DNA from: Mizuhopecten yessoensis
Taxonomy: Eukaryota
Direction of reading: 5' to 3'
DNA length: 64,000 bases
NCBI RefSeq assembly: GCF_002113885.1
Contig: NW_018406583.1
Span: 873,478 to 937,477, forward strand
Shown here: positions 6,120-47,031 of the stretch, piece by piece
How the letters are laid out: every line of letters begins with the position of its first letter
How positions within the stretch are numbered: the first letter of the stretch is position 1
Notes under the pieces: model-generated
Told to the model about the DNA's origin: nothing
Databases searched by the model: none
What the model saw: the letters and a program-made list of their open reading frames with translations, nothing else
Made by a program: the position numbers and the translations under genes

Positions 6120-7367
6120 ATGCATGGTAAACTTATCCGGGCGCTATTGAGCGCCATGCTGGTCGGATCATCCGGGTTCCTTATAGGGCTCATGTACACA
6201 ATGGAACAACAAAGGGCAGTTACTCCAGATCCTTTCAAGATTATGACCACCGCTTCTGTGTCGCGACACATGTCAAATATGACGTCAAATAGCTCGTCAT
6301 ATTCAGAATCATCAGTCAATTCATCGCTGCCTACACCCAATACTACAGTGGAAGCTTATGAGACATTTCTAAAATACGACCCAAAAAACTTTTCTTATCC
6401 GGCCGATTTCAATTTGAAACAAGCTGTACATGATCTTATTGATAAGAATAATTCAATTCCGGAAGTACACAAGAGGATTCACTTACATAACTTCGAGTAT
6501 CTACATTCACCTGAACCATGCACATTTCCCAGGGACGAAAAGAGAAACAGAAATATGTTAATATTGGTAAAATCGTTTGCAGGTAATTTTAATTTACGAA
6601 AAACACAAAGAGCATTATTAAAGAAAACTAAATTGCTTGGTCGCACTAAACAAGTTTTTATACTAGGATATAACGCCACCTATCAGGATTTCGTTGACAC
6701 GGAGAGCCGTAAGTTTAAAGATATCATACAGGAGGACTTCGTTGATACTTACCTCAACAATACCTTAAAAACAGTCATGGCTTACAACTGGGTCGACACT
6801 TTCTGCAGGGATGCGTCCATCTTGTTTTTTGTGGATGACGACTACTATGTGCATTACGATAAAATCTTTAAGCATATACGAGCTGTGTTTCAACAAAAAA
6901 GTACGGGTATATTCGCAGGAACGTTAGCCAGTAGAGCGGTTCCATACCGCCGTCACGAGACCGTCTGGTCCTTGACGTTTGACCAATACCCGTACGACTA
7001 TTTCCCGCCCTATATAGGGGGCGGGGCGTACATTGTGTCTCATGACGTTGCACACAAATTTGCTGTTTCCTTCCCATATGTGCAATTTCTTGGAATAGAC
7101 GACGCTTACCTTGGTATCGTGGCCAAAAAGCTTGACATACCACCATCATACAATCCAAACTTTGACACGGCAAAACGGACAGCTTTAGCGCGGGAATGTT
7201 CTCACAGCGCTCAAGAATTGGCCAATCATCAATGTCCTATCGCTAAACGTAAGAGTGAATTTATACATTACAGGCGTCCACGTAAACCCGTTAGTTGGCT
7301 TGACATCTTACCTGTGGTTATTTTTCTTAATTTGTTATTTATGATTGGTGTATGGTGTTCAAACTAA
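6120..7367 (+). CDS. GT31 beta-1,3-glycosyltransferase, brainiac/BRE-5-like, single domain (gene G1, 415 aa)
   Basis: Motifs ILVKS, IIQEDFVDTYLNNTLKTVMAYNW, FFVDDDYY (DxD), YPYDYFPPYIGGGAY, GIDDAYLG and ECSH. N-terminal hydrophobic segment, Ser/Thr-rich stem, hydrophobic C-terminus. Splice acceptor ttttttttcag ends at 5848. Confidence 0.93.
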   Translation: MHGKLIRALLSAMLVGSSGFLIGLMYTMEQQRAVTPDPFKIMTTASVSRHMSNMTSNSSSYSESSVNSSLPTPNTTVEAYETFLKYDPKNFSYPADFNLKQAVHDLIDKNNSIPEVHKRIHLHNFEYLHSPEPCTFPRDEKRNRNMLILVKSFAGNFNLRKTQRALLKKTKLLGRTKQVFILGYNATYQDFVDTESRKFKDIIQEDFVDTYLNNTLKTVMAYNWVDTFCRDASILFFVDDDYYVHYDKIFKHIRAVFQQKSTGIFAGTLASRAVPYRRHETVWSLTFDQYPYDYFPPYIGGGAYIVSHDVAHKFAVSFPYVQFLGIDDAYLGIVAKKLDIPPSYNPNFDTAKRTALARECSHSAQELANHQCPIAKRKSEFIHYRRPRKPVSWLDILPVVIFLNLLFMIGVWCSN

Positions 7368-7637
7368 TCACGTGACTGTGTTCATTTTTTACAATACATA
7401 GTTGTAATATTAGTGCATGTTTTATAGAACACTGTTTTTAGTGGATCTGAACAACAGTAATCAGGAAAGTTGCTGTTCCGGAAATTCTCTAGTACGGAAG
7501 CTCGCTATCATGGAATCTCGCTATTCCGGATACTAATGTTGAAGAAATGTTGTTTTTCGTCTATCGCGGGAGATTTTATTTTTCACTATTTTTTTCTGAT
7601 TTTATTTTTTTGATTTTCAGAAATTCGCTTCTTTCAA

Positions 7638-8333
7638 TTATATACGCCCGTCAAATTTGACGGTAGTATTATGGTATGGGGTTGTCCGTCCGTCCGGCGT
7701 AAACTTTTGTTTGTCCGGCAATCTCTTCCTACATTTTTCGACCGATCTCTTTGAAACTTTGAAACTTGGTATACATTATAATCATGATATGAAGTTGTGT
7801 CTCCCTTAAAAGAATTTTGATTTCATAATTTTTCCAAAAGTTATTGCACTTTGTTCATTTCAGTATTTGATTTTTTGTCCGGAGATCTCCTCTTACATTT
7901 TTGTACGGATTTCTTTGAAACTTAGTAGGCTAAATAATCATTATATGTTGGTGTGTTTCCTTGAAAAGAATTTTGATTCAACCATTGTTGCAAAAGTTAT
8001 TGCCCTTTGTTTATTTCAGTATTTGATTTTTGTTCGGCAATCTCCTCCTACAGTTTTTTAACGGATCTCTTTGAAACTTGGTATACATTATAATCATGAT
8101 ATGAAGTTGTTTCTCCCTTAAACAAATTTTGATTCGACGATTTTTGCAAAAGTTACTGCCCTTTGTTTATTTCAGTAGATGAGTTTTTGTCCAGAGATTT
8201 TCTCCTACATTTTGTATAGCCTGTCAGCTAACCACTCTTAGAATGATGCAGATCTTGTTTCAATGAAAGAAAGTATATAACACTATATGGCATTCGACGG
8301 GCGTATATTGTTCCGCTCGGCGGTACTCTTGTT
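7638..8333 (+). mobile_element. Helentron-associated interspersed element (HINE / DINE-1-like) with internal ~160-bp tandem repeats
   Basis: 5' subTIR tatacgcccgtc, short IR, (gtcc)n microsatellite, about 3 core repeats, 3' subTIR gacgggcgtata, stem-loop ccgctcggcgg, then ctcttgtt. Confidence 0.88.
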
Positions 8334-9843
8334 GTTTTTGGAAACTCGCTATTACGGAAAGTCGCTACTCAAACACCTCGCTATCACAGACGAAAATGTT
8401 CAGAATATCTTGTTCTCAGTTTAATATTGAAAATGTAGTACTTCATTTTTCCGAAAAACAGTTAGATTAATTCATCTGCTACTTGTAGTTAAATGCAAAT
8501 TAACCTTAAGTCGCATGATGTACTAATTTCAGGCTATCAAATACTTTCATTTATGTGTTTTTTTCTAACGTCAGTTATTTTTTTATTTGGATCATGAAAA
8601 AATTAAGATTTCTGTCCATGTTTGAATGTTGTTTGATATAATATTTGCATGGCAAAACATATATACTTGTTCATATTTACAACATATGTAAGTATTGATT
8701 ACTTCCTAAATCTCAGACTGATATTCAAGAAATATAATTATTAATTTAAATTTGATATTTATACTTTAGTCAAACACTGTTTTTTTTTATCCAAGGTTTT
8801 TGATGTCGGCCTTACGAAAGTTTCATAAATCTTTTACATTTCTAAATCTATAAATACGAGGTAAAGCGACAAATTCCAATATTTTAAAGATTTTCGTGTT
8901 TAGTTGCTCAGCACTTAATGAAGGTTAAGCTACGTAAGCTTTGAACAGCTGGGTCAAACAACTCCTCTTTTCTGCCATCGAGTTTACGACTTTGGAATTC
9001 GTTAGACAATACAATAAGAACATTACCATCTTTAAATACTTTTAAATCTTCTATATTTAGTGGTACAAATTCGTCTCCGCCATCTTATTTTAATTTTGGC
9101 GAACGTAAATTAAATATATTACATACGAAACTCAGGAATCAGTGCAGCTCTTTGAAAAATGATTTGTTCCGTGTTAAGATTGTTTATAATCCATCATGCG
9201 ATTGTCGACATTCTTGTGAGGATATTGTCCATTTCTTCTTAGAATGAAAGCTTTTTAATACAGCACGAATTACGCTATTTCAAAACATAAGCTCGTTGAA
9301 TATATATCCAGTTAATTTATCTTTATCTTTATTTGGCAATGTAAATCTGTCCGTAGATACCAATACAGAAGTATTCAGACACGTATAATTTTTCATCAAA
9401 TCCAGCGACAGGTTTTAAGTAAAATATAATAATTGTATGATATAGTATTTAAATGTTATCATGTAAATATCAATATGCAATGTATTAGAGGAAAAGATGT
9501 TGATAAGTTAATATAACTTGTGCCTAATCCTTTGCTCAAATTGGGGCAAAAAATATTTATGTTTAAATAAAAATAATCAACATCTGGGTCCAGAATATAT
9601 AAGTTTCTATACACCACTAATCACCCGGAAAAATAGATTCCGGAATATCTATAATCTGCTCAATCTCTACCTAGAGTGGTCGTTCCTCACACTCATTACA
9701 GCAGCTAAAAAGTGGTCTGCATAATAATAAGCCTCTGATCATGTATCATAGTCATGTGTCGTCAAGCCGTACAATATAAGCGGCATACGACAAGGTGGAT
9801 AGCATCGACCTCGAGCTCATCAGTGTACAGAAAAAGTGAGTGT

Positions 9844-9947
9844 AAAGAACAACAACTCTTGGTACAGATAAAGAACGACAACTATGGGTACAGATAAAGA
9901 ACGACAACTCTGGGTACAGATAAAGAACGACAACTCTTGGTACAGAT
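9844..9947. repeat. 27-bp tandem repeat, about 4 copies
   Basis: aaagaacgacaactcttggtacagata repeated. Confidence 0.85.
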
Positions 9948-10520
9948 TGTGGTCTGCTGTTACTACCTCCTATAATAATTTATCTTCAACATCTACATTC
10001 ATTGATCAAAAATGTATTACTGATAACTTACTATTTATAATATTTTCAATCGATACCTTTATGAATTGTTTACAATACTTCTCGTAAAATGTTGGAAATA
10101 GCTATTCATTTACATTCTAGTTCATGTGTGATAATTTCGATATATGAGTGTATGTATTTAAACTATTATGTGATTTTTCCTTAACATTTCATTTTACATG
10201 AGTAATAATATAAAACCAAGTTCTATCAGTGTTCAATATTTATTGTTTGTCCATCTCCATTTTCACAGATTATTTTTGGTTATTAACTCACAATGGAAAA
10301 CAATCCACAGACACGCATGTATTAAAGAAAGTTAGGTATCAGTACACTATATTTCAGTTAAACACGTTTTTCAAACCTGGAATGACGTAAGGTTTAATAT
10401 CAAACTACGAGTCAGCAAAGTTTAGCATGAAACTGTGAGTCAGATGAGGTTTTGAATTGAACTACGGGTAAGCTGAAGTTTGATACGGTAGTACAGTACA
10501 GCCACTCACTTACATCTCGG

Positions 10521-10592
10521 TAGTCTCGTTCAACCAGACGCTTGATCACTTGAAATATGCAAAGATAAAAAGAGTCTGGTTGAACGAGACTA
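10521..10592. mobile_element. 72-bp MITE with 19-bp TIR and 9-bp TSD (acatctcgg)
   Basis: acatctcgg|tagtctcgttcaaccagac...gtctggttgaacgagacta|acatctcgg. Confidence 0.9.
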
Positions 10593-11481: not shown

Positions 11482-11970
11482 ACTAAAGGACGGTCTGACA
11501 TTCTAGCTTCAAAATAAACCCACGCGTTCATGAATGAGTAATAGATTTGAAGTCTTGTGTATGTTTTAAAATAAGAAATGTTATTCTCTCATGATGAATA
11601 AAAAAAAATAGTTAATTATTAGAGATGATTTTTATTTCCGTTGATCTTGAATATATGATTCTATTAGCAGAGTTGAATAAAATAAGAATTCATCAGGTTT
11701 CAGGTTCCGTATGCCGAAACAAAAATGTGTATTTTCATGGAAGATAACGTACATTCAGTGAATATCTATGTGTTCGTATTTTTATAACAATCATCTCACA
11801 ATATTGCAAAATACATGTAAGTTGTGTTCAAAATTATATCGGAAATCAAAAGGATTTTTTTTTTATCCACATATGGAGGCCACATAACAATTTCCTAATC
11901 TCTCTCTTTTGGGTAAAGGTCGACAAACACGGCAAAGTGTGAATTTAACGGCGAGAAAGCTATAATTCGA

Positions 11971-12960
11971 GAATACGACGGAGAGGACGCTACGACATCA
12001 GAATACGACGGAGAGGACGCTACGACGTCAGAATACGACGGCGAGGACGCTACGACGTCAGAATATGACGGAGAGGACGCTACGACGGAGAGGACGATAC
12101 GACGTCAGAATACGACGGAGAGGACGCTACGACGTCAGAAAACGACGGAAAGGACGCTACGACGTCAGAACACGACGGAGATGACGCTACGACGTCAGAG
12201 TACGACGGCAAGGACGCTACGACGTCAGAATACGATGGAGAGGACGCTACGACGTCAGAATACGATGGAGAGGACGCTATGATGTCAGAATACGACGGAG
12301 AGGACGCTATGACGTCAGAATACGACGGAGAGGACGCTTCGACGTCAGAATACGACGGAGAGGACGGTATGACGTCAGAACACGACGGAGGGGACGCTAT
12401 GACGTCAGAATACGACGGCAAGGACGCTACGACGCCAGAATACGACGGCGAGGACGCTACGACGTCAGAATACGACGGAGAGGACGCTATGACGTCAGAA
12501 TAGGACGGCAAGAACGCTACGACGTCAGCATACGACGTCAAGGACGCTACGACGTCAGAATACGACGGATATGACGCTACGACGTCAGAATACGACGGAG
12601 AGGACGATACGACGTCAGAACTCGACGGAGAGGACGCTACGACGTCAGAATACGACGACAAGAACCCTACGACGTCAGAATACGACGGAGGGGACGCTAT
12701 GACGTCAGAATACGACGGCAAGGACGCTACGACGTCAGAATACGACGGAGAGGACGCTACGACGTCAGAATACGACGGAGAGGACGGTATGACGTCAGAA
12801 CACGACGGAGAGGACGCTATGACGTCAGAATACGACGGAGAGGACGCTACGACGTCAGAATACGACGGCAAGGACGCTACGACGTCAGAATACGACGGAG
12901 AGGGACCGCCAACGCGAGATTACGACGACGAGGTAGCGAAGACGCCAGAATACGACCGCG
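11971..12960. repeat. 30-bp CpG-rich minisatellite (~33 units), probably internal to a non-autonomous transposon (~11910-13101)
   Basis: Unit gaatacgacggagaggacgctacgacgtca; degenerate inverted units (gcgtattctcgc, gccgtcgtatt) follow at 13000-13035. Confidence 0.95.
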
Positions 12961-19237: not shown

Positions 19238-21409
19238 ATGCAAATGCAAGGAAAGTGTGTCCCAAAACGTAAGGGCATACTCCGTGTATTAGCGGGGCTA
19301 GTAGCGTTTACAGCGCTATCCGTGTTTGTTGAGTTGTCTGTTGCAGACTGGCGATATGACATCGTGGCAAACACAAACCCAGAACCTCCGCAAGACGTTC
19401 TTGTCATCGACATCCCACCAACTGCCATCCCGGTGAAGAAGGAGAAGATCGTATACCAGTCGTACGAGAAAGATTTCGCCTACCCATCTTTTGTAAACTT
19501 GTCCGCATTAGTTGCCGAGGCAACCCGAAAGAACATGACTTTTATACAGAACCCCCCGATAAACTACCATCCTTATAGGTATAACAACGTGCCAGCCAAC
19601 TGCCGACTACCGATGGATGGAGGTTCTACAAAACGCATCCTCATCATTGTCAAGTCGTTTGTGGGAAACGTTGAGATGCGTGTTGCAATAAGATCGCTTT
19701 GGGAGAAGATTAAAGACCCTTACATGGCTCTCGTGTTCATGCTGGGGGAATATCCGAAGGAAAATAATGGCCGACGCTGGCCCATAGACAGGGAGAATAG
19801 GATCTACAAGGATCTTATACAGGAAAACTTCGATGATTCCTACTTTAACAATACATTGAAGACCATCATGGGGTTTAACTGGGCAGTGAACAAATGTCCA
19901 CAGGCGGACCTGCTTCTCTTTCACGATGATGACTATCACGTGAAATATACGAATCTGTCCATTCATCTTCGAAAAGTATTAGCAGTCAACAAAACAAACA
20001 TCTACAGCGGAAGTTTGGCGGTAAAAGCAAGACCTTACAGAAATCGAGGAGAGCGTTGGTTTGTAACCATTCATCAGTACCCGTTCGATGTTTTCCCGCC
20101 TTATGTAGGCGGTGGAGCGTACGTTGTGTCAGCAGACGTGGCAAGGAAATTTCAAATGGCGTTCCCACATGTACGGTACCTGAGTTTTGACGACGTGTAT
20201 TTAGGAATTGTGGCTAGGAAGTTAGATATCATACCTACAAGCGATATGCTTCTCGATACTCTCTACCCGGATGCTCTCGCGCAGGAGTGTTCCCATAAAG
20301 CGAACGAATTATTCAGAGGTCAGTGTCCTCTAGCGATCAAAAAGCGGCAAATAGCAAACACGCCGGAAATTGTTGAGGAGAGTGAAACGAATAACACCGA
20401 TAACAGTAGCGCTATGCCATATCTGTCGTTTGAAAATAGTTTTTCTTTCCCGTTAGAGGCTAATATAAGATCGGCAATTAATGGGAAGATAATTCATAAT
20501 CATAGAATAAATCTCAGAAATATAAATGCTCATCCCTATCTGTATATAAGTGAACCGGCAGAGTGTAAGTTTGCCAAACACAGTCAAAATATCATTGTAT
20601 TTGTGAAGTCTTATGTTAAAAATGTAGAACAAAGGGCTGCAATACGTAGGATGTGGAACGAAAGTCTTCAGACGCATTCCACATCTCTAAAGTTGGTTTT
20701 CCTCCTCGGACAGGGAATCTATCCAGAAGACAAACCTCCTGTGGAAGCGGAGGTCGAGACTCACAAAGACATTTTACAGGAGGATTTCACAGAACACTAC
20801 AGAAACAATACCTACAAAGTTGTTATGGCACTGAATTGGGTAATGGCGAATAAAGCATGTTTTAGGACGCGTTTGCTGCTGTTTCTAGACGACGATTACT
20901 ATGTACATCAGAAAGAATTGCTGACATATTTGCACGGGTTATCCAACCATAATACACTATTTCTCGGAAAAGTCATGAAAAAGCAGGTTCCATGCAGACT
21001 TGAACGCGACAAGAGAAATCTTGTCTACAAGCAATATCCATTCGATATGTTTCCTGACTATATAAAAGGTGGTGTGTTTTTATTGTCATTCGAAGTTGCC
21101 CGTAAGTTTCAGCTCTCTTTTCCATACGTGAAGTATCTTCCCCTGGACGATGTGTACCTTGGAATCGTGGCCTGGAAGTTGCACATAGACCCCAAACATG
21201 ACCTAGTTTTTGACACATCGTCGCGTTCTGCTTTAACTTACGAATGTTCACATGTTGCCGCGCGGCTTATAAAAGGAAAATGTCCTCTGCGCGGAGAAGT
21301 TATAAAGAGTACTGTTCCTAAGATAACCAGACGAAGAGAAGGATTTTTTTCCCGTTTGATGAAATTACCTCAAATTTTTCAGTCCTTGTTTGGTAAGTTT
21401 ACGAAATAA
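19238..21409 (+). CDS. Tandem two-domain GT31 glycosyltransferase, both domains with intact motifs (G2, 723 aa)
   Basis: Type II TM anchor (ILRVLAGLVAFTALSVFV). Domain 1 has LFHDDDYH, PPYVGGGAY, FDDVYLG, ECSH. Domain 2 has LFLDDDYY, PDYIKGG, LDDVYLG, ECSH. Acceptor ttcctacag ends at 19027; AATAAA overlaps the stop. Confidence 0.93.
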   Translation: MQMQGKCVPKRKGILRVLAGLVAFTALSVFVELSVADWRYDIVANTNPEPPQDVLVIDIPPTAIPVKKEKIVYQSYEKDFAYPSFVNLSALVAEATRKNMTFIQNPPINYHPYRYNNVPANCRLPMDGGSTKRILIIVKSFVGNVEMRVAIRSLWEKIKDPYMALVFMLGEYPKENNGRRWPIDRENRIYKDLIQENFDDSYFNNTLKTIMGFNWAVNKCPQADLLLFHDDDYHVKYTNLSIHLRKVLAVNKTNIYSGSLAVKARPYRNRGERWFVTIHQYPFDVFPPYVGGGAYVVSADVARKFQMAFPHVRYLSFDDVYLGIVARKLDIIPTSDMLLDTLYPDALAQECSHKANELFRGQCPLAIKKRQIANTPEIVEESETNNTDNSSAMPYLSFENSFSFPLEANIRSAINGKIIHNHRINLRNINAHPYLYISEPAECKFAKHSQNIIVFVKSYVKNVEQRAAIRRMWNESLQTHSTSLKLVFLLGQGIYPEDKPPVEAEVETHKDILQEDFTEHYRNNTYKVVMALNWVMANKACFRTRLLLFLDDDYYVHQKELLTYLHGLSNHNTLFLGKVMKKQVPCRLERDKRNLVYKQYPFDMFPDYIKGGVFLLSFEVARKFQLSFPYVKYLPLDDVYLGIVAWKLHIDPKHDLVFDTSSRSALTYECSHVAARLIKGKCPLRGEVIKSTVPKITRRREGFFSRLMKLPQIFQSLFGKFTK

Positions 21410-25578: not shown

Positions 25579-26721
25579 ATGACTTCGCGAAAATCCAAGA
25601 AGCAGATAATTGTCACGACGGTAATTCTATTCATAGTTGGTAACATAAGTCTGGTGTTTGAGATTAGTTCTGTTGAAGAATCGTATGGTCGTAGAAAGCT
25701 TATCATAAGTGGCAATATGTATCAAAACGTTTCTATCTTTCAACATTATCCTCTTGATGTAGATCTAGCAAATGTTGTCAATGAGGCAATATTACATAAC
25801 ACAAACATTCCGTATAAACCCATTAACCCGTATTCCTATAAATGTATACACACTCCTGTTCCGTGTGATTTTAAACGAGCCGAGAATGAAAGCAATTCAA
25901 TCCTTATCGTTGTGAAATCACATGTACTTAACACCAACCAACGACTTGCTATTCGACATGTGTGGAAGAATGCACGTGACAAACGCGTTCGGCTGGTATT
26001 CCTGCTTGGAACTTACAGTTTAGAAGGCGAACAATGGCGGATTGAAAAAGAAGTTAAACTGTATCACGATATCGTTCAGGGAAACTTCGTCGACAGTTTT
26101 GATCACATCACATACAAAATAGTTATGGCATTTAACTGGATCGATAGACATTGCACCCAAGCTGACTTTTTGCTATTCGTTGATGATGATTTCTACGTGT
26201 ATCCGACAGCAATGTTGACATTTCTAAGACAACTACCAAATCAACAGGATACATTTATTGGAAAAGTAATACAGAAACAATTTGTTAAACATAATTAAGA
26301 TATTCAAAAAACGCCTAAATTTAGGCATTATACATTTAAGGAAATACCGACGTATGTGCATGGTGGATCATTCGTGATGTCACAAGACACGGCGCACAAG
26401 TTTCATATAGCTTTTCCCTATGTTAAATACTTTGAAATTGATGATATCTATCTTGGAATTGTGGCACAAAAACTCGGCATCCATCCGCGGCATGACTCGC
26501 GTTTCGACACCAGTAGCCCCCTGGCACTAGCCTTTGAGTGTTCTCACTTTGCCCCGAGACTGTTGAAAGGGGAGTGTCCCCTATCTGGATGGCGCAGGAC
26601 TCTCCCTCCTGTAACAGTAACACAGGTGACAAAGAAGCCCGATACCTTCTGGGTACGCCTCAGGATGTTACCCCAAATAATGAAATCTGCAGCAAAACAG
26701 ACGTTTCATTCATTTGTATAG
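25579..26721 (+). pseudogene. GT31 gene with a single in-frame TAA at 26296-26298 (G3); pseudogene, null allele or base error
   Basis: ORFs 25579..26298 and 26356..26721 are in the same frame (offset 777 nt). Reading through gives GKVIQKQFVKHN*DIQKTPKFRHYTFKEIPTYVHGG, the same length as the matching segment of G2 domain 2. FVDDDFY, IDDIYLG and ECSH are retained. Acceptor ends at 25392. Confidence 0.85.
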
Positions 26722-32251: not shown

Positions 32252-34396
32252 ATGGCGAAATGGACGGTTACTCGACCTCGCTGTCCCTTGTTTCATCCTA
32301 TCTTTGCCGTAAGCCTGATCAGTGTTCTTGGCCTGCTGTTACAGATGCTGAATCTTGCCCTGAAAACTACAAGTAGGCCATCCATTTGGGACAGTGAAGG
32401 AAACATTCACTCATTCCTAATTCCAACGGACGAATTAAACTCATCTGACATTGAATACCTGTCGTATCAAAAGGCTTACGCGTATCCCCCTGAAGAAGGC
32501 AATCTGTCTCAGATGATTAGGGATTACATTTCACATGACAAACCAATACCCCTTAAAGTTATCAATCCTCATCCATTCTCATACATACATCGTCCGTTGC
32601 CATGCAGTTTCGATAATGGTGCTTCTGGCAAGATGATTGTGCTTATAAAGTCCTTTGCTTTAAACTTTGGATTTCGAAAGGCTCAAAGAACACTCTGGAA
32701 GAGCGTGAACCAGACATCAATGTGCTACGTGTTCATGCTAGGTTATAACGGTAATCCGGGTGTTCAGAGGAGGATAAATGAGGAAGCCAATCGCTATAGG
32801 GACGTTATGCAAGAAGATTTCATCGATGCTTACTTCAACAACACTTACAAAACAATCATGGCGTATAACTGGGTAGTACGATATTGTCCCGACGCTAATA
32901 TTTTGCTGTTTCAGGACGACGATTACCACGTTAAATGGAATGAAGTTGCAATCTATATGCGGAAACAATTCCAGGATAAGAGTGAGAATGTGTATTGTGG
33001 TAGTCTGGCCCTTAATGCCCCTCCATATAGAAAGGAGAATACTAAGTGGTTTCTTACTTTCCAGGATTATCCTTTTGACCTGTTTCCGCCGTACATAGGA
33101 GGGGGTGCATATGTTGTGTCTTTTGATGTCGCTCAACGATTTCAACGTGCATTCTCTTATGTCAGGTATTTAGGTATAGATGATGTCTATCTCGGCATTG
33201 TGGCCCAGAAACTGTCCATTCGGTCAGAAAACGAGACTCTCTTAGACACAGTGAACAGAGATTCACTAGCTAAAGAATGTTCGCATGTCGTTGATAACAT
33301 CATTAATGACAAATGTGATTTAGCTGACAGGAAGCGGGAAATATTTGAGCTTGGGTTGCAGACGACAACACTTCCAACTAAAGCCATAGTACTTGTAAAT
33401 GGTCAACCAGTTGAGGTGGATGATACTATATATTTATCATACGACGAAGAATTTGCATATCCTTTGAAAGTAAGACTTGATGAAGCAGTGAAGGGTGTGG
33501 TACTATACAACAACAAAATTCGTTTTTCTCCTATCAATGTTCATAATTTTTCGACAATAAATCAGCCATTGCCATGTTCATATCCGTCGCAAACGGGGAG
33601 ACATCAAAACTTGCTCATCCTTGTAAAAGTAGATTCAAGCAATTACAAAATACGCAATGAGATCAGATCTTTGTGGAAATCTCTTAATGATCCTGCGATC
33701 AGAGTGATATTCCTGCTAGGACATTCCTCGAAAATTCAAACTCGAGTCGACAAGGAAAGTGCTCACCACAAAGACATTCTACAGGAAAAGTTCAAAGAGC
33801 ACCATATGCACTCTACCCGCAAAATTGTAATGGGATTTAACTGGGTAGAGACCAAATGTTCTAAGGCCGACCTGGTGTTAGTGTTAGAGAGTATATACCA
33901 CGTTAACTCGACACAGATGATAGATCATCTGCAAAGATTATCAAAGAAGAAAGACGTTTTCATAGGTAAACTTTGGAAAAATGTTAGTCCTCACAGAGAA
34001 AAAGATAATAAATGGAAACTGAGTTATGACCATTATCCATTTGACAAATTCCCTCCCTATTTGTCAGGTGGAGCTTTCGTGACATCTTTTAACATTGTAC
34101 GTAAGTTTAAAATTGCTTTTCCATATGTTAAGTACTTCGGAATTGACGATGTTTACTTGGGTATAATTGCAAAGAAGCTTCGCATAATACCGACACACGA
34201 CTCCTACTTTGAACCTCTTAGCACAATAGCTCTTGTTAAGAGGTGCCCTCGAGAGTTTTATAGGATCGTTAATGGACGATGTGTGGAGCAGAATTCTCTT
34301 CCGTCGTCAGGTTCTAATAAACATTATATGTGCAACATTTTTCTTTACTTTTACCTTTCTGCGTACTCTTTTATTCAAATTTTATATTTCTGCTGA
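32252..34396 (+). CDS. Tandem two-domain GT31 glycosyltransferase; domain 2 lacks DxD; hydrophobic C-tail (G4, 714 aa)
   Basis: TM anchor. Domain 1 has LFQDDDYH, PPYIGGGAY, GIDDVYLG, ECSH. Domain 2 has LVLESIYH in place of DDD but keeps PPYLSGGAF and GIDDVYLG. Acceptor ttttctgcag ends at 32150. Confidence 0.92.
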   Translation: MAKWTVTRPRCPLFHPIFAVSLISVLGLLLQMLNLALKTTSRPSIWDSEGNIHSFLIPTDELNSSDIEYLSYQKAYAYPPEEGNLSQMIRDYISHDKPIPLKVINPHPFSYIHRPLPCSFDNGASGKMIVLIKSFALNFGFRKAQRTLWKSVNQTSMCYVFMLGYNGNPGVQRRINEEANRYRDVMQEDFIDAYFNNTYKTIMAYNWVVRYCPDANILLFQDDDYHVKWNEVAIYMRKQFQDKSENVYCGSLALNAPPYRKENTKWFLTFQDYPFDLFPPYIGGGAYVVSFDVAQRFQRAFSYVRYLGIDDVYLGIVAQKLSIRSENETLLDTVNRDSLAKECSHVVDNIINDKCDLADRKREIFELGLQTTTLPTKAIVLVNGQPVEVDDTIYLSYDEEFAYPLKVRLDEAVKGVVLYNNKIRFSPINVHNFSTINQPLPCSYPSQTGRHQNLLILVKVDSSNYKIRNEIRSLWKSLNDPAIRVIFLLGHSSKIQTRVDKESAHHKDILQEKFKEHHMHSTRKIVMGFNWVETKCSKADLVLVLESIYHVNSTQMIDHLQRLSKKKDVFIGKLWKNVSPHREKDNKWKLSYDHYPFDKFPPYLSGGAFVTSFNIVRKFKIAFPYVKYFGIDDVYLGIIAKKLRIIPTHDSYFEPLSTIALVKRCPREFYRIVNGRCVEQNSLPSSGSNKHYMCNIFLYFYLSAYSFIQILYFC

Positions 34397-36102: not shown

Positions 36103-37251
36103 TTAATGTTTACCAGATGTAAATATTTGTTGAAAAAACAGTAGTGATTTCTGAATCAACATCATCATATTTGTAAATACATCTGTCAAATTCTTTATTG
36201 TATATTCAAACCCTTTAGCTACACGTCCAGTGGAAACATATGCGACAGTTTGACATCGTGCCGCCAATAACTCTGAGGGAGTATGGGAGCATTCCTTTGT
36301 AATGCTTAAATGGTCTCTTCTCGACAGTTCTGTAGAGTGCCTTGGAGATATTGACAATATCTGAGCGACTATCCCTAGGTAAACGTCATCTACACCAATA
36401 TATCTGACGTAAGGAAACGCCATTTTGATTTTTTTGCTGACGTCATAAGAAATGACATAAGCCCCTCCCGCTAGGTATGGTGGATACGATCTAAAGGGGT
36501 ACACTTTAGGATCGACAAACCACGAAGATCCTACATTCCTATACGGTTGTGCCCGCCTTACAAGGTTTCCAATGAATAAATCTGTGTGATTCTTTCCGGA
36601 CTGGTATAGAAATTGAACCAGTTTATCCCATCTTACAAAATAGTCATCATCTAGAAATACCAACAATCGTGCCTCAGAGCAATACTGAGTGGCCCAGTTA
36701 AATCCCATAATAGTTTTGAAGGTATTGTTAGAGTAGGCATCAACAAAGTTTTCCTGTATCAGATCCCCGTATGTTTCATTTTCCTGAGTAATCCTGTCTT
36801 TATAATTGTCTCCAAGTCCTAACATAAATACGAGTTTAACACTTGATCGTGTAGCTTTTCTTGCCATTTTTCTTATAACAACTCTTTGGTCGATGCTTCC
36901 CACAAACGATTTCACTAACACCAGTGTATAAGGCTGTCTTGAATGTGTAAAATTGCAAGGTGATGGGGAGTAATAATATATGTAGGGGTGAGGGTTCACT
37001 TGTTGTCGAGGAAGTGGGATATTATTATTTAAATGTTTTTCTACAACCTCCCTGATGTCAAAGGTCAGGGGATAGGTATATTCCTTCGCGTTAAATCTAC
37101 TATGGTCGTTTTTTCTAGGATGAATATTGTTTTTATTGACGTTTTTGATATTGATATATAATAAATACACAAGAAATATTCCTAATAAAATACAATATAA
37201 CCGTTTTCTCTTGGGTACCGATGGAAACATTATGACTTTTCCCATATACAT
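36103..37251 (-). CDS. GT31 glycosyltransferase, single domain (G5, 382 aa)
   Basis: KRKR followed by TM (LYCILLGIFLVYLLYI); LVLVKS, LIQENFVDAYSNNTFKT, VFLDDDYF, PPYLAGGAY, GVDDVYLG, ECSH. Confidence 0.93.
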   Translation of the reverse strand: MYMGKVIMFPSVPKRKRLYCILLGIFLVYLLYINIKNVNKNNIHPRKNDHSRFNAKEYTYPLTFDIREVVEKHLNNNIPLPRQQVNPHPYIYYYSPSPCNFTHSRQPYTLVLVKSFVGSIDQRVVIRKMARKATRSSVKLVFMLGLGDNYKDRITQENETYGDLIQENFVDAYSNNTFKTIMGFNWATQYCSEARLLVFLDDDYFVRWDKLVQFLYQSGKNHTDLFIGNLVRRAQPYRNVGSSWFVDPKVYPFRSYPPYLAGGAYVISYDVSKKIKMAFPYVRYIGVDDVYLGIVAQILSISPRHSTELSRRDHLSITKECSHTPSELLAARCQTVAYVSTGRVAKGFEYTIKNLTDVFTNMMMLIQKSLLFFQQIFTSGKH

Positions 37252-39415: not shown

Positions 39416-40687
39416 AAGACACTACATTTTTTCATTATTGTTTTGTGTATTCGATGATGTATTGACATAAGTTAATCTTATCATACACTTGTTCCAAAAG
39501 ATATTTTCCGAAAATTCCGTATTTATCATAGCGTTAAGTTAACAGTGCTTGAAAACTTTAGTCTTGTTAGTTGTAACGGTTTATTGTTTGGTATGGTTTT
39601 GTTACAAAAAAAGTATGAAGGTATTTTATCATTTAATTCTTGTCATTGAAGAAGAAACTATACTAAGTTCGAATATTATGTGAAACAAAAATAATGATCA
39701 CAACGATATATAAAATATCATAACTTGATTTTAGAATTAACTTTATACCTAGGAGGTTCCTCACTTTGATTGAAAAGCTGTTATCTCGATGAATCAAAAC
39801 AACTATGATATCCAAATCTGTATTGTGTTATTTTTGGAGATATTGTATTTTGAATTATTGATCGTTTATAGCTAACAGATCTGATAGAGCTTCAATTTAA
39901 AAAGGAGCTTTTTTATAATGTTCAAGATGGAACGGTTCATGTCAATGAGCAATGTCAAACAGTTGCCTTTTGCATGAACATGATTACTTAATGTTGCCGT
40001 AAACAATGCAAACAACAACATATAGGTGCACATATCATAATAGAAAATAACGACGATATTGGTAATAAAGGAATTCATGGTTCAGTAGTTTTCATATTGG
40101 GTCGATACTGGTTGACTTAAAAAAAATAAAAATCTAGAAATACTTTAATATCAAATGCTTATATGAAGTTATATCTAAACGGTATTTTGGATAATACAAA
40201 TGCTTTCCTTTTATCTGGTTTTCCATGATTTTATTTCTACATGACGCTGAACGATTCGTACATAGCATAGATAAGAGGGTGACATGATCAAAGTTGACAT
40301 ACTTATGCTAATTTTCAAGAAAGTTGTAGTCATATTAATATTCATTAATATTGTAACAAAATCAATTGCTGAATGACATATATCCAGGATAGACAGATAA
40401 CCTGCTTGTCCACCAGAGTTACATCCCTTGCGTAGCATGTAGCCACAGTACTTACATTCAATAAAGACACGAACGAGATACAAATTAGTGTATGTTTTAT
40501 TTTTACCTGTTTATTAAATAACTACAGCAATTTTTAAACAATGCTACTTTTTATAAATCTGGTATTATTCTTAATTACAATAAGAACTTGAGCCCTATCC
40601 CTTTGACTATTCAGTATCAATACAATATGTTTGAATGGTAAAACAAAACTTAATTACAATGATAAGACAAAATACGTATCTACACAG

Positions 40688-42649
40688 TTATGGGTTATCT
40701 CTAAAGAACGAGGTCTGGTTCCTCCTATCAAAATGTGGATCATGGCTCGGTATTACCATTAGTTTACTCGCTACTATTCCAAGATACAGATCAACATTAG
40801 GGCAGTATTTGACAAATGGAAATACAACATGGAAAGACCTGACGATGTTAAATGACATGACGTAATTTGAACCAATCACAGACGGCGGAACGTGATCAAA
40901 AGGATAATCTCCCTCGCTCACATACAAAGGTGAGCCTTGTCGTCTATCGGGATTCCTTTCATCAACAACGTGACCAAGAAATACACCATTATTATTGTTT
41001 TTAGTTTTAATGAGTTTCTTCATAAATGCAGTTATCATGTCGATATCTACATTGATATTTCCATCAAGAAATATAACGAAATCAGTGCTTTTGCAATATT
41101 GCACAATCCATGCGAAGGATGATACTGTTTTAATGGTATCAAAGAATTTGTCTTTCACTGCAGAGACCTGTATTATGTCACCATAATTCTTACTTTCAGC
41201 ATTTACGTCTTTCTGATGGATATCCTCTGATCCTAGTACGAATACTTGTCTGACGGTTCCTATATCCGTATATTTCCACATCTCCCGAATGGCTGACCGC
41301 TGCTCTGTGTCGGTAGGATCAGACCAGATGACTACAAGAATATGGGCCGCGTCGTGCCCTTTCGTCGTAAACTTACATTGAGTCGCATTGTGTACAAGAG
41401 GTAGTAACTTTCTGTTGGTTGGTGTTTGAGGTATCTCTTCGCAATGAAGAATTTTTCGCTTCACAAGTCGTCTTAAATTAATATTTAGAGGATACGAGAG
41501 TAACTGTCTAGAAATGTTTTTACCTGCTAATGCAAATAATGATAATGGATTTGCAGGATCAAGATAAGGATCATAAGTCTGTTGTACTGACAAAATCCTT
41601 GCAACATTGCCTAGGTAACCATTTATATCATTGTCACTATTTTTAATATAGGGGAAAATAATTTGAAACTTTTTTGATACATCACGTGACACAAGGTTAA
41701 CGTTGGAGAAGGCAGCCTTTGTCACAGCAGTGTTACCAATGAACCCCGATTTATTAGGTGGTAATGATGGTACAAGATCACCACGAAATAAAGGTGATGG
41801 TTTAAGAGTCACTAAGTCTCTTATGTACTCGAATAATATGTCTGATCTTACTTGAAGCGTCTCGTTAACGCTGAGGATAACGTCGGCTTTAGAACAATGT
41901 TTAACGGCCCAGTTGTATCCCATTATCAACTTTAGAGTACTGTTCTTGTAGGAGTCATGGAAATCCTCCTGTAGAATATCTCTATGCCTGTCACTCTCTT
42001 CCTCAATCACATATTGGTCGTCCTCTAGAAACCCCAGCAGGAACACTAGACGTGTATTTGGATCCTTCAGTTCTCCCCAAGTCCGTCTAATTATCTTTCT
42101 ATAATAATAATTTCCGGGCCGCGAGTACATCAGAATTACGATTTTAGAACGGTTTCCGTGGAAATTGCAGTCACTTGGCAAGGAAATCGGTTTATACGGA
42201 TGTGGGTTCGTTGGTGGGAAGGGTGAACCGCCGATTCGGATATTTTCTAGGACAGTAGTTATGTTCAAATCTGTCAAAGATTTCCTTTTTTCCTCTTGTG
42301 CAGTTGTCGTAACGTTCGTAATAGCTTGGAGCTGACTGTGAACCGAAATGGCAAGCGAAGTATCTGACGCTTCTTTTCTACTTGTGTTGCCAAAGCTGTT
42401 AACATTAGTAGAACAAAGACTTTCTGACTGTCCTCCGAATAAATGGCAATCCACTACAGGGCGTCTATCTTTCCTGTTATCGGGAATCTGCTCCAGTAAA
42501 GAAAAGTTCATCTTGTAGATGCATTCAAGGGTTGCAAACACCATCAGGATACCGATCATTTTCACAATAACGCTTCTCCTGGTGAAAAGAAACAGTACTT
42601 GTAACAGTTTGTTTCTGATCGCTTGATAGTGCAACAGGACCAAACCCAT
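40688..42649 (-). CDS. Tandem two-domain GT31-like protein with both catalytic sites degenerate (G6, 653 aa)
   Basis: GT31 scaffold motifs (RRTWG, VFLLG, DILQEDFHDSYKNSTLKLIMGYNW, DIIQ, YPFDHVPP, YLG) occur twice. The DxD positions read SVNET and FLDGN. Acceptor on - at 42670-42671; candidate donor gtaaga at 43121-43126. Confidence 0.88.
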   Translation of the reverse strand: MGLVLLHYQAIRNKLLQVLFLFTRRSVIVKMIGILMVFATLECIYKMNFSLLEQIPDNRKDRRPVVDCHLFGGQSESLCSTNVNSFGNTSRKEASDTSLAISVHSQLQAITNVTTTAQEEKRKSLTDLNITTVLENIRIGGSPFPPTNPHPYKPISLPSDCNFHGNRSKIVILMYSRPGNYYYRKIIRRTWGELKDPNTRLVFLLGFLEDDQYVIEEESDRHRDILQEDFHDSYKNSTLKLIMGYNWAVKHCSKADVILSVNETLQVRSDILFEYIRDLVTLKPSPLFRGDLVPSLPPNKSGFIGNTAVTKAAFSNVNLVSRDVSKKFQIIFPYIKNSDNDINGYLGNVARILSVQQTYDPYLDPANPLSLFALAGKNISRQLLSYPLNINLRRLVKRKILHCEEIPQTPTNRKLLPLVHNATQCKFTTKGHDAAHILVVIWSDPTDTEQRSAIREMWKYTDIGTVRQVFVLGSEDIHQKDVNAESKNYGDIIQVSAVKDKFFDTIKTVSSFAWIVQYCKSTDFVIFLDGNINVDIDMITAFMKKLIKTKNNNNGVFLGHVVDERNPDRRQGSPLYVSEGDYPFDHVPPSVIGSNYVMSFNIVRSFHVVFPFVKYCPNVDLYLGIVASKLMVIPSHDPHFDRRNQTSFFRDNP

Positions 42650-44437
42650 GATGGAAGGTTAATACACTTCTGAAATGAGAAATAGACAGACGACCAATTA
42701 AATAATGCTGCTGATTTCTATTATAAATTCCTCGTTTAGTCTTTTTTCCAAGATGAAGGGCGGAAGTCTACTCTTTCCTTATAAAATATTTTCGATGAAA
42801 ATGAAATAGTTCGTTTTCATTTTCGTAGTTTCAGTTTAAAAGATATATCATTGGTAATTCCAAATATGGTACATTTTATGAACAAACCAGATCAAATGAG
42901 TAACACATAGTCGCCATAGTCAACACACGTTTCAAATTGTGCTAAATATAGCAATATGTATATATATCATAATGACTCAATACTGTAATAAATCAACCGA
43001 AACCACCTGTATTATATCTATGCTAATTTGATGTTAACAGAGATAGCAATTAATGTATACCTATATACATATACTACCGACACCCTACTTAGTATATTTC
43101 TTATAATAACACATATTGCTTCTTACCTTTCATACTGGGTCTGGCGAATGAAAATTTCTTACAAGACATAAAATATTTCTTCCACATTTTAAACAAAATA
43201 TCTATGAAAATCACATATTCTATACAAAAGCATTCAGCGAGTATTGTTAGTCATTGTTCTGTATTTATTTTAATGTAATTAACACTAAACAAAAACCTTT
43301 GTTATACATACAAACATTTAAAATGGCGTTTTCAAAGACACAATTATTTAAGACTTATCGTATAAACTATCGCACTTCAAATATTTAGTTAAGTCGGTCA
43401 ATCAGCTCTTTATTATCAACAATCTATTTGTAAACAAACCCTTTACAGTATTGTCTTTTACGAGTCAGTAAACATTGTAAAATTACTAAGGAACGATAAC
43501 CAGGTGTCAAATGTCGAATTAAACAGTTTGTTTTGAGGAGTGTCGATACCCTGGGATAGATTTAAATATTTGATTGGAGGATATGACATTTAACAAAACC
43601 TTAAGGTACTAAAGAACCAAGTCGAATTTGTATTTGGCAGCCTATATCTAAGCGTAGATCAAGTGTTCACTGGCAGCGGTCCCTAAAATATTGAATTTAT
43701 ACGGACAAATGAAACTGTCGTTAAGGCGACTTTTGGAATTTTGTATTTCTAGGTTTGAAGCAAAGAAAAATATACGCTAGTAGAGGAATGTAGTTTAACT
43801 TTTTATACAAAAAATAAGGGGCTTGTAGCCCGTCTTCAAAGGTGCATGAATATATTTTTGTACAACATGTAGTCAATCAAAGTCAATTAAAGTCATTTAA
43901 AGTCTTGTAATTGTCAAAATTATTTGGACATTGGATGTAAACTCACATGCAGATGTATTTGTAGATTTGACCTGGATTAACATGCCGATTGTCGTCAATG
44001 AAGCAGAAGACGCTTACCCTTCCGAATCACCTGGTCTTATACTTCTTCTTCTGTTTCATTGGTCTCCATGTTAATCTTTCCTTTGATGACACTTACTGTT
44101 CTTTTTCGTTTTCTTTTTAATATGATGCAGTTATATCAAATTGTTATTAATGTGTATTGAACAAACAGTTAATTATTGTCATACAGACTTCGACATTGTC
44201 GTTCATATTAATGGCTTATTAATTTATTTTACAATTTTGTAAGGACAAATTAACTTATTTGCGATGTGTTAATGTAATTTTAACAATAGCAAGGCCCAAC
44301 TTTATGTGTTAATAATAAAACTGTCTTTTTCATACACATCTACCTCCGCACAACTATACGTGTTCAAAATAAATAAATTGTAAACAGATTTACCCAATGG
44401 CACTTTTCAAAGATGAACGCAACACACAAACACATAG

Positions 44438-44468
<31 letters not shown>

Positions 44469-44471
44469 CAC
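44438..44471. repeat. (CA)n microsatellite
   Basis: Run of ca dinucleotides downstream of G7. Confidence 0.9.
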
Positions 44472-44760
44472 GTGACTGCACCTTTAAAATTTTGATAATA
44501 GATTCAGTATGCCATAAACAAGTTATTCTGCATCATACAGCTGTTTCGTAAAAATTCAGCATTAATTCCCAATCACGTTTAAATGTTCGTGATTCATTTT
44601 GCAAAAAAAGATGGGTGGTGGGGATGATGAGGTAGTGATGGCAGCGTTTAATTTCATATTGATTTAATACCAGGTGATCATAGAAAATATCCAAATGAAT
44701 CATTTCCGGAAAGTTAATAACAAAACAGAAAGCCAAGTACGATTCGGTTGACTATTTATT

Positions 44761-47031
44761 TCATGTTACATCAACAACAGGTAATTTTGATTTGATTTTA
44801 ACTTTCCTTATTACTGTGATTTTTTTGGGTGTAGTTTTAGTTTTGAGTAGATCCTTTGATGAAATGCATTCTTTTGTAATTATCTTCGCAACAGACGAAT
44901 CCGGGCACTCGGCCACAGCCTCGAGTTTTGGCGGATCGACAAATATACTGTCTTCCTTGGGTTTTACTTGTAATTTTCGCGCTACAAAACCTAAGTATAC
45001 GTCACTTCGTCCAAAATATTTCACAAATGGAAATGCAACTTGAAATTTCCAGGCTACGTCTGATGATATAACATAAAACTTTTCATTAAGAAATGGCGGG
45101 AACTTTTCCAATGGATACGTTTTCCGTGACAGGAATAACCGTGAATCTAAATCGCGTGTTGGATATGCGTTTTTAACTAACTTTCCTCTAAATATGTCTG
45201 ATGATTGCTTGCTTGGCAAAACGGTCCTTAAGTATTTTAAAGTTCTGTTGATATCAATATCATATCCTTCCTTCAATACAACGATGAAATCTGCTTGAGC
45301 ACAGAACTTAGCCGCCCAATTGAACCCCATTATTGTTTTTCGGGTACTGTTCATATAATCGTCCCGGAAGTCCTCCTGAATGACGTCACGATACTTCCGG
45401 CTTTCCTCGTCAACTAATGATTGTTTCGAGCGTCCCATCCCTAACAGAAAAACTTTCTTGAAGTTATAGTCTCGATGAATGCCCCACAATTTTCTCAGAT
45501 ACAATCGCTCTTCTACGTTGGACGCTTGCGACTTGACTAAAAGAAGAACGTTTTTTACGTGTTTGTCTGCATGAAGGAAAGAACATCTGTTTGGGCGATG
45601 GACGTAGTTGTAGGGATGCGGGTTGATTGGTGGAATGCTAGAGTCTTTGTGACGTAGAAGTTTATCGTTCACTAGTTGCGTCATGTTAACCATCAATGGA
45701 TAGTTGAATGTTGAGTTATCTGTAAGGAATTTACCATCAGGTAACGGAATGGTTGGTTTCAGAAGAAGTCGGCGTTTCCTATCCGCTATTTGACAATTCC
45801 CTGACACAAGCTCTGCTGGGTCGTGCGAACATTCTTTTGCCAATGAAATGTTAGAGAGAGTTGAAAAATGAGCGTCGTATTTTGGGGTTATAGCAAGTTT
45901 TTTAGCTACAATTCCTAGATATACATCATCTATTCCTAAATATTTTACGTATGGAAATGCAACTTTAAATTTCCTTGCCACATCTTTGGAAAGCAAATAT
46001 GCCCCGCCTCCAATATATGGTGGAAAGTGATCGTATGGATATTCATGGAAACTTGTTTTCCATTTTGAATTTTCGTTCCGTTCTGGCTTTGCAGCTATAG
46101 CAGTTGATCCGAGATAAACGCCTGTTTTATTCATCTTTTCGATTCCTCTGATGTATTTAATCAAAGCGTGAGGCTGAACGTGATAATCGTCATCTAGAAA
46201 CAACAACATGTCGGCCTCCCAACAGTTCTTCATTGCCCAGTTGTATGACATAACCGTTTTCAAAGTGTTATTCATGTAGGCGTCTAAGAAATTCTCTTGG
46301 ACAATATCATTATACTGGCGGACCTCCTCGTCCACCAAGGCCTGATAGGACCCGTTGTAACCTAGCATGAACACGCGCCGTACGTAGGGGTCACGCAAAT
46401 CCCTCCACATCGCCCTTACCGCCGCCCTTAGCTCCATATTTGACACGGCAGATTTAATAAGCACCAATACCGTTTTCGTGCTGTTGTTATGGTGCGGGAA
46501 ATGACACTTGGGAGGAGGCTGGATAAAACTGTATGGGTGAGGATTGATCTGGCGATAAGGTATGCGCTGTTTGAACACTATCAGGTTGTTTACAAGACGT
46601 TCTAAGTCTATTTCCAACGGATAAGAATAACTGTCGTTGTATGATAAATATTTACGAGATGTTTCGTTAAATTCTTCTTCATCCTCTGGTCCCACAAAGA
46701 CGGAAGGTAGTTGTATTTCCATATCATCAAATCGTTCATCGTAAAAGCTGTTATCCAAGGCACCGTCTGCTTCTATATCTATCACCGTATCGGTAACGTT
46801 ATTTTCAGTTTCAACTACTTCTAAAGGTTTCCGAAATTCCTGTTTGATAGCTGTTTTTCCAGTCACTATTATGATATCGGTTTTTTGAATCATGTAAGAA
46901 AAATTAAGTAAAAGTCCAAGAAATCCAAACAACAACACAGCAAAGAAGAAGCAAAAAATGCTCTTAATATTTAGTTGTTGTATCAAAAATACATGCGTTA
47001 TCTTTAACTTGTTGCTGACAAACTTGAACAT
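44761..47031 (-). CDS. Tandem two-domain GT31 glycosyltransferase; domain 2 degenerate (G7, 756 aa)
   Basis: TM anchor and acidic stem. Domain 1 has LFLDDDYH, PPYIGGGAY, GIDDVYLG, ECSH. Domain 2 has VVLKEGY, PPFLNEKFY, GRSDVYLG. Basic C-tail. Acceptor on - at 47220-47221. Confidence 0.92.
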   Translation of the reverse strand: MFKFVSNKLKITHVFLIQQLNIKSIFCFFFAVLLFGFLGLLLNFSYMIQKTDIIIVTGKTAIKQEFRKPLEVVETENNVTDTVIDIEADGALDNSFYDERFDDMEIQLPSVFVGPEDEEEFNETSRKYLSYNDSYSYPLEIDLERLVNNLIVFKQRIPYRQINPHPYSFIQPPPKCHFPHHNNSTKTVLVLIKSAVSNMELRAAVRAMWRDLRDPYVRRVFMLGYNGSYQALVDEEVRQYNDIVQENFLDAYMNNTLKTVMSYNWAMKNCWEADMLLFLDDDYHVQPHALIKYIRGIEKMNKTGVYLGSTAIAAKPERNENSKWKTSFHEYPYDHFPPYIGGGAYLLSKDVARKFKVAFPYVKYLGIDDVYLGIVAKKLAITPKYDAHFSTLSNISLAKECSHDPAELVSGNCQIADRKRRLLLKPTIPLPDGKFLTDNSTFNYPLMVNMTQLVNDKLLRHKDSSIPPINPHPYNYVHRPNRCSFLHADKHVKNVLLLVKSQASNVEERLYLRKLWGIHRDYNFKKVFLLGMGRSKQSLVDEESRKYRDVIQEDFRDDYMNSTRKTIMGFNWAAKFCAQADFIVVLKEGYDIDINRTLKYLRTVLPSKQSSDIFRGKLVKNAYPTRDLDSRLFLSRKTYPLEKFPPFLNEKFYVISSDVAWKFQVAFPFVKYFGRSDVYLGFVARKLQVKPKEDSIFVDPPKLEAVAECPDSSVAKIITKECISSKDLLKTKTTPKKITVIRKVKIKSKLPVVDVT

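Follow-up and report, generated by a model that had tools for sequence, protein, structure and literature searches.

A segment of about 41 kb in the genome of the scallop Mizuhopecten yessoensis, in which glycosyltransferase genes carry intact and degenerate catalytic domains, raises the question of what a domain that has lost its catalytic residues does when it is kept in one chain with another. The window analyzed here is a 64,000-nt stretch of the NCBI RefSeq assembly GCF_002113885.1 (contig NW_018406583.1, positions 873,478 to 937,477, forward strand), and unless stated otherwise coordinates are positions within it. The segment consists of seven intronless open reading frames (ORFs), designated G1 to G7, that encode glycosyltransferase family 31 (GT31; PF01762) proteins with 11 domains in total. 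G1 and G5 are single-domain, G3 is single-domain with an in-frame TAA, G2 combines two active domains (d1 and d2, numbered from the N-terminus), G4 and G7 each combine an active with a dead domain, and both domains of G6 are dead. The evidence presented below makes it probable that this segment is an old cluster of the Pectinidae, made up of seven brn-like GT31 genes that include covalent enzyme–pseudoenzyme tandems, and that the dead domains are non-catalytic partners.

A PF01762 profile search matched all seven ORFs at 87-270 bits (the curated cut-off is 23 bits), with two matching stretches in each of G2, G4, G6, and G7. A tblastn search of the window with all of the domains returned exactly 11 domain footprints and no additional relics. 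A preliminary description of this DNA had listed seven paralogues, 11 domains, and the same architectures, and the ORFs, the profile, and the tblastn search confirmed this inventory. Four genes lie on the forward strand: G1 (6120-7367, 415 amino acids; domain at 6369-7259), G2 (19238-21409, 723 amino acids; d1 at 19457-20347 and d2 at 20426-21316), G3 (25579-26721; domain at 25726-26601), and G4 (32252-34396, 714 amino acids; d1 at 32462-33331 and d2 at 33437-34312). The other three are on the reverse strand: G5 (36103-37251, 382 amino acids; domain at 36217-37101), G6 (40688-42649, 653 amino acids; d1 at 41522-42295 and d2 at 40694-41521), and G7 (44761-47031, 756 amino acids; d1 at 45775-46644 and d2 at 44851-45726). 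The single TAA of G3 is located at 26296-26298, and the frame past it is uninterrupted to 26721. Since the G3 orthologues of Argopecten (383 amino acids), Pecten (387 amino acids), and Ylistrum (380 amino acids) have no stop and the G3 branch is not lengthened, the stop is recent, a segregating allele, or an error.

The stem module (YPL…INPHPY…C.F) was alignable in nine of 10 domains, G3 having been omitted from the alignment, and it is eroded in G6d1 and G6d2. Every domain aligned over approximately 290 residues to the single-domain G5, with the stem module ahead of the catalytic core included; therefore, duplication involved the lumenal region as a whole, as the preliminary description had proposed. 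A hydropathy scan revealed one N-terminal hydrophobic signal-anchor in each of the seven proteins and no second signal-anchor between the domains of the two-domain proteins. The PF01762 matches and the signal-anchors agree with the earlier assignment of the genes to GT31 with type II topology. Judged from their sequences, the proteins would be type II membrane-anchored beta-1,3-glycosyltransferases that presumably reside in the Golgi lumen, and four of the genes encode two full lumenal modules (stem plus GT-A domain) per chain. Two C-termini deserve separate mention. That of G1 (7260-7367) is a strongly hydrophobic segment (…KPVSWL.ILP..IFLN..FMI..WCSN), nearly unchanged across four scallop species; on a type II enzyme it would amount to an additional membrane segment, which would be unusual for GT31. 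That of G4 (34285-34396) is a hydrophobic tail following a Ser/Gly-rich stretch, present in G4 and two orthologues; its hydrophobicity is kept in all three and its sequence is poorly conserved, as would be the case for a glycosylphosphatidylinositol signal.

The catalytic state of each domain was scored with the five GT31 motifs (I-V) of Petit et al. 2020 (PMC8022947). All five motifs are intact in G2d1, G2d2, G3, G4d1, and G7d1, and G2 is the only gene with the full catalytic kit in both domains, this kit comprising the motif-I Trp, the DxD, the G-loop, the two Asp residues of motif V, and a C-terminal His. The motif-I Trp is the sole motif loss of G1 and G5 and is missing from every orthologue of these genes; it is replaced by Leu or Phe in four G1 orthologues (Leu in the G1 of the window) and by Ala in two G5 orthologues. 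This Trp is thought to bind the uridine diphosphate (UDP)-sugar. The DxD motif reads DDD in G1, G3, G5, and both domains of G2, DDD and ESI in the two domains of G4, NET and DGN in those of G6, and DDD and KEG in those of G7. Besides the DxD, G4d2 has lost the His of a motif that reads ECSH in G1, G5, and both domains of G2 (RCPR in G4d2), and keeps motifs I, III, IV, and V. In G7d2, too, the loss goes beyond the DxD: the G-loop is without its glycines (NEK), motif V is without its first Asp (RSD), and the ECSH His is gone (ECPD). In G6d1 part of the loop before the G-loop, on the acceptor side, is deleted and motif V contains an insertion; in G6d2 motif V reads NVD and the C-terminus is truncated.

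The ECSH motif is located approximately 33 residues downstream of motif V. Among 57 scallop domains, the DxD and the ECSH His were both kept in 38 and both lost in 16, which fall into five orthologue groups, and the DxD was never lost alone. The five groups are G4d2, G7d2, G6d1, G6d2, and the first domain of a fifth two-domain gene outside the window. A C-terminal His of the GT-A fold has been described as a metal ligand in GT31 (PMC13597200), and we infer that the ECSH His is this ligand from its position and co-variation, the alignments to B3GalT5 and B3GNT2 ending upstream of it. The fifth two-domain gene lies on another scaffold (L004:7098-9299, reverse strand, corresponding to G000:C3892 at about 427-429 kb) and encodes 733 amino acids in the reversed order, with a dead first domain (NDN, ECSD) and a live second one; it has orthologues in Pecten and Argopecten. 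The second domain of this gene reads KHCSND in M. yessoensis versus KECSHD in the orthologues.

All seven genes have one-to-one orthologues in Argopecten irradians, where G1-G2-G3-G4 are followed by G5-G6-G7 on the opposite strand of CM084277.1, in the same order and orientation as in Mizuhopecten and within approximately 34 kb. Parts of the cluster were recovered in two other scallops: Ylistrum carries the orthologues of G1, G2, and G3 on a single contig, and those of G2 and G3 are adjacent in Pecten, which also has a G1 orthologue. In four species neither domain of G2 has lost any of motifs I-V or ECSH, and the G6 orthologues of Argopecten and a third scallop share its degenerate motifs. The cluster is thus older than the split between Mizuhopecten and Argopecten and has been retained gene for gene.

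Between Mizuhopecten and Argopecten, the proportion of synonymous differences (pS) is 0.64-0.83, which is saturated; ratios of nonsynonymous to synonymous rates are unreliable at this level, and the values are used here only to the extent that the proportion of nonsynonymous differences (pN) is far below pS. The pN values are 0.167 for G4d2, 0.132 for G7d2, 0.258 for G6d1, and 0.264 for G6d2, compared with 0.175 for the intact G2d2, and pS for the dead domains is 0.64-0.77; their ORFs are intact in at least three species. The dead domains are dead in all of their orthologues and are under purifying selection. The former DxD site of G7d2 reads KEG, KDG, and KEG across orthologues and its RSDVYLGF is invariant; DGN in G6d2 and NDN in the first domain of the fifth gene are each found in all three species. 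The corresponding site of G4d2 drifts (ESI in Mizuhopecten, EDM in the Argopecten orthologue, DDS in that of another scallop), and the remainder of the domain is kept. Because of these conserved degenerate motifs and the low pN, the dead domains are not decaying copies.

The main rival to our interpretation holds that the degenerate domains are still catalytic, either metal-independent or specific for another donor, with basic residues replacing Mn2+, so that G4 and G7 would be bifunctional like G2. The constraint on these domains is as strong as that on the intact G2d2, and the four motifs that remain intact in G4d2 fit such an enzyme, but the drift at its DxD site means that no new catalytic residue has been kept there. 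G7d2 has a Lys at the first Asp of the former DxD and an Arg before motif V, basic residues at former metal-ligand positions that are conserved in three orthologues, yet this domain has no G-loop glycines, and in G6d1 the acceptor-side loop is incomplete. G4d2, G7d2, and G6d2 have retained both the motif-I Trp and the residue presumed to be the catalytic base, which is the second Asp of motif V; against this, the joint loss of the DxD and the C-terminal His in five groups is the pattern of metal binding abandoned as a whole. An altered or missing DxD in GT31 moreover accompanies proteins regarded as inactive, namely Cosmc and CHPF (PMC8022947), and the N-terminal domain of B3GLCT (PMC13597200). 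We therefore consider it unlikely that these domains are enzymes.

Our comparison with RNA data covered the G6-G7 region. A 2122-nt contig from a small, presumably RNA-derived assembly was colinear with 40650-42671 and contained the whole G6 ORF, a 2407-nt contig covered G7, and reads of one raw RNA-seq run extended across both domains of G7 (44850-46649) at a depth of approximately 3-10. No splice joints were found in the G6 or G7 contigs and reads, and the spacer between the two genes was nearly empty. G6 and G7 are thus transcribed as unspliced ORFs, and the single coding exon previously ascribed to each of the seven genes holds at the ORF level. A 35-bp piece between G6 and G7 (44004-44038) attracted reads from three runs. 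At either end these reads ran on into unrelated sequence; they reflect a short stretch in common with a transcript from elsewhere and not local expression.

The genes are already present in NCBI under generic names, with models that deviate from the plain ORFs. G2 is 100% identical to the M. yessoensis protein P0001 except at the modelled C-terminus, where P0001 splices off approximately 36 last residues (window 21300-21409) that are conserved in the orthologues. The G6 model P0040 removes 40 residues between the domains (window 41500-41620), a piece that is conserved in the orthologues and present in the contig; this intron is contradicted by the unspliced contig colinear with the whole G6 ORF. 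Such discrepancies, together with the G3 stop codon, might suggest that the two-domain ORFs are artefacts, fused during assembly or annotation, or pseudogenes in decay. Uninterrupted two-domain ORFs, however, recur in three to four scallop species whose genomes were assembled independently, and the orthologues of G2, G4, G6, and G7 in other scallops are on transcript-sized Logan contigs of 2.1-2.8 kb. The lack of a second signal-anchor and pN values far below pS are likewise at odds with an artefact or decay, which we regard as highly improbable.

A domain tree of all taxa placed the 11 domains and a few single-domain scallop paralogues in one scallop clade adjoining oyster and mussel sequences. 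In a careful tree this clade had a support of 95/83, so that the domains do not scatter among GT31 subfamilies, and each domain formed an orthologue group supported at 100/100. Only two deeper joins were supported: G4d1 with the G2d1 group (98/89) and G3 with the G2d2 group (96/89), G3 being sister to the second domain of G2. The deep branches among the domains form a polytomy, by which a single-fusion history is allowed and not proven; a constrained clade of the second domains of G2, G4, and G7 with G3 cost 0.14 log-likelihood units and was not rejected (approximately unbiased test, p-AU 0.485). A single ancestral gene with two domains, followed by local duplication, is the probable origin of the tandems. 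A single "type B" clade of all second and all dead domains, which appeared in quick trees, collapsed to the polytomy in the careful tree and is not claimed.

Drosophila Brainiac and Caenorhabditis elegans BRE-5, to which the genes had been likened, are single-domain glycolipid beta-1,3-GlcNAc transferases, a group defined by transfer to Man-beta-1,4-Glc-ceramide. For the subfamily placement we used one insect Brainiac (brn), from a gall midge, as a stand-in for the Drosophila and C. elegans proteins, together with scores against solved structures. The stem module and the signatures FVDDDFY and DDIYLGIVA are also present in the insect brn, with which the domain profile aligns from profile position 3, stem included. 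In the tree the insect brn lies outside the scallop clade and joins the bivalve clade in preference to a mussel "B3GALT1" or the proteins of echinoderms and hemichordates; other invertebrate GT31 groups are more distant from the scallop domains. Some 30 scallop loci elsewhere match the insect brn better than any gene of the window, the best being C3256:549863 and C5094; the highest-placed gene of the window ranks approximately 35th. For this reason the window genes, which on sequence grounds belong to a brn-like subfamily, are not orthologues of Brainiac. The Brainiac type suggested earlier therefore stands for the subfamily and its shared signatures and falls for orthology.

PF01762 matches number at least 142 in the scallop genome, where many belong to tandem arrays, and a profile search of 1.84 billion proteins returned 12,255 relatives. 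The top-scoring relatives include multi-domain proteins, all unnamed or generically named, from hemichordates (P0044, P0045, P0047, and P0050; up to seven stretches in about 2,100 amino acids, the long models being predicted proteins), echinoderms (P0181, P0091, P0100, and P0114; about 640-965 amino acids), mussels (P0097), and a centipede; a further such protein, P0048, comes from the European Nucleotide Archive. A 720-amino-acid sea-cucumber protein clusters with 12 Logan sequences of equal length, each on a contig of 2.5-3.0 kb. The first domain is dead and the second live in three of the four echinoderm proteins (one from a starfish and two from crinoids), and the first domain of the sea-cucumber protein is partly degenerate (DDH). 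According to the tree, the tandems of oyster, mussel, echinoderms, and hemichordates arose separately from those of scallops; the oyster fusion is recent, because its two domains are nearly identical. The two-domain architecture is accordingly not unique to the scallop lineage, and tandem clusters of GT31 genes are unremarkable within the scallop genome. Our literature search, which was not exhaustive, found no description of a tandem or two-domain PF01762-type GT31 or of a GT31 expansion in scallops. The earlier proposal of a lineage-specific and undescribed system is retained as far as the single scallop clade is concerned, and is weakened by the number of arrays, by the two-domain forms elsewhere, and by the presence of the genes in NCBI; the glycolipid, mucus, shell, and toxin-receptor roles proposed with it are conjectural. 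The distinctive feature is the conserved enzyme–pseudoenzyme tandem, which the preliminary description had listed and left uninterpreted.

The same observations lend some weight to an ordinary tandem expansion, in which the second domains would be passengers that aid folding or spacing and the cluster would be one of many GT31 arrays for general glycan diversification. With so many arrays in the genome, and with tandems that arose independently in four other groups, the fusing of neighboring intronless copies seems easy. Under such an expansion it is harder to see why the seven genes and their states have been kept gene for gene despite saturated synonymous sites, why the degenerate motifs RSDVYLGF, DGN, and NDN are conserved, and why G6, with no live domain, has been kept in three species and is transcribed. 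We regard this explanation as possible and rather doubtful, and continue to favor an old cluster whose dead domains are non-catalytic partners. A broader hypothesis, which we put forward tentatively, is that tandem GT31 proteins are an unrecognized design that recurs in marine invertebrates, in scallops and independently in the mussel, oyster, echinoderm, and hemichordate lineages, and that comprises as many as seven domains. In such proteins a live GT-A domain would be covalently linked to a dead partner for reading or docking the glycan acceptor. All stages (live+live, live+dead, dead+live, and dead+dead) would be preserved in the scallop cluster, and G6 would be a free pseudo-glycosyltransferase regulating its neighbors.

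An AlphaFold2 model of residues 120-756 of G7 contained two GT-A domains, with a predicted local distance difference test score of about 90 for d1 and about 80-85 for d2. A Foldseek search with this model gave B3GNT2 (7jhk), B3GalT5 (8zwp), and B3GalT6 as the best matches (for 7jhk and 8zwp, E about 1e-20 and target-normalized template modelling (TM) scores of 0.66-0.77), and B3GalT5 and B3GNT2 were also the best solved relatives by sequence. Weaker matches to the whole model, with TM scores of 0.21-0.26, were COLGALT1, CHSY3-CHPF, and LARGE1. A complex prediction of G7 d1 against d2 scored 0.00, a "no answer" that is neutral with respect to binding.

Several points weigh against the interpretation of an old cluster with non-catalytic partner domains. 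The predicted TM score of the G7 model was 0.51 and its linker was of low confidence, so that the model does not confidently position the two domains with respect to each other. Two of the three raw RNA runs, X20 and X23, gave no reads on G6 or G7, a result of little weight, and the RNA nature of the assembly holding the G6 contig is a guess. To these points may be added the catalytic residues and conserved basic residues that the degenerate domains retain, the alignments that stop short of the C-terminal His, the polytomy among the domains, and the abundance of GT31 arrays in the genome, which lowers the claim.

Proteins of GT31 with a dead extra GT-A domain are already known from B3GLCT, in whose structure the dead N-terminal domain docks the acceptor (PMC13597200). 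Like the scallop tandems, B3GLCT has two GT31-type GT-A domains per chain that originated by internal duplication, one of them vestigial, its DxD altered and its C-terminal His missing, and in both cases the dead domain has been retained. B3GLCT, however, is a soluble protein of the endoplasmic reticulum from the Fringe branch (PF02434), whereas the scallop proteins are brn/B3GALT-like (PF01762) type II membrane proteins, and its dead domain comes first, whereas that of the scallop tandems is second in G4 and G7 and first in the fifth gene, with both domains dead in G6 and both live in G2. Cosmc (C1GALT1C1) and CHPF/CHPF2 are GT31 pseudoenzymes, regarded as inactive, in which motif I and the DxD are lost or changed and which act as obligatory partners of an active paralogue in trans (PMC8022947). 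They are the best model for G6; unlike the scallop tandems, they are encoded by separate single-domain genes of other GT31 branches and are neither fused to nor clustered with their partners. COLGALT1, LARGE1, and CHSY, the two-GT-A-domain enzymes paired weakly with the whole G7 model, resemble it in architecture and not in domain arrangement, and their domains come from different CAZy families or origins, unlike those of the scallop tandems. The two live sites of LARGE1 and CHSY build a repeating polymer, an example of what a protein with two live sites, such as G2, could do.

The remainder of the window contains several repeat arrays. A minisatellite at 11970-12903 has a 30-bp unit in approximately 27 copies, for which 60 bp is an alternative unit length; it accounts for a GC-rich, AT-skewed patch and for a spurious ORF of 263 amino acids (12080-12871), which was rejected as a gene because it is translated minisatellite. 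A satellite at 56252-59500 (32-bp unit, approximately 101 copies, 91% match) is the cause of the rise in GC content and GC skew at 56-60 kb. Shorter arrays are located at 47495-48620 (65-bp unit) and 7757-8213 (156-bp unit). Two short ORFs of 94 and 101 amino acids at 61066-61695 on the reverse strand resemble by eye the tail of a retroelement reverse-transcriptase gene.

As to what the scallop proteins do, the intact domains would be Mn2+-dependent inverting UDP-sugar transferases, as far as their motifs indicate. G2 may be a bifunctional enzyme with two sites that makes two linkages in succession. By analogy with B3GLCT and with Cosmc and CHPF, the dead C-terminal domain of G4 and G7 may be a fused non-catalytic partner that docks the acceptor glycan or stabilizes the active domain, and G6, which has no live site, may be a free-standing pseudo-glycosyltransferase.

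Pseudoenzyme partners recur in glycosylation, as Cosmc, CHPF, and the N-terminal domain of B3GLCT illustrate, and few systems show how they originate. The scallop genes provide a natural series within one gene family, comprising two live domains, one live and one dead domain in either order, and two dead domains. Each live or dead state has been conserved since before the compared scallop lineages separated, so that the role of a dead GT-A domain is directly testable. GT31 proteins with more than one domain occur widely among marine invertebrates and are absent from a survey of GT31 architectures, in which no Galactosyl_T + Galactosyl_T combination is among those given (PMC8022947). For the biology of scallops, the enzymes of the cluster may shape lineage-specific glycans.

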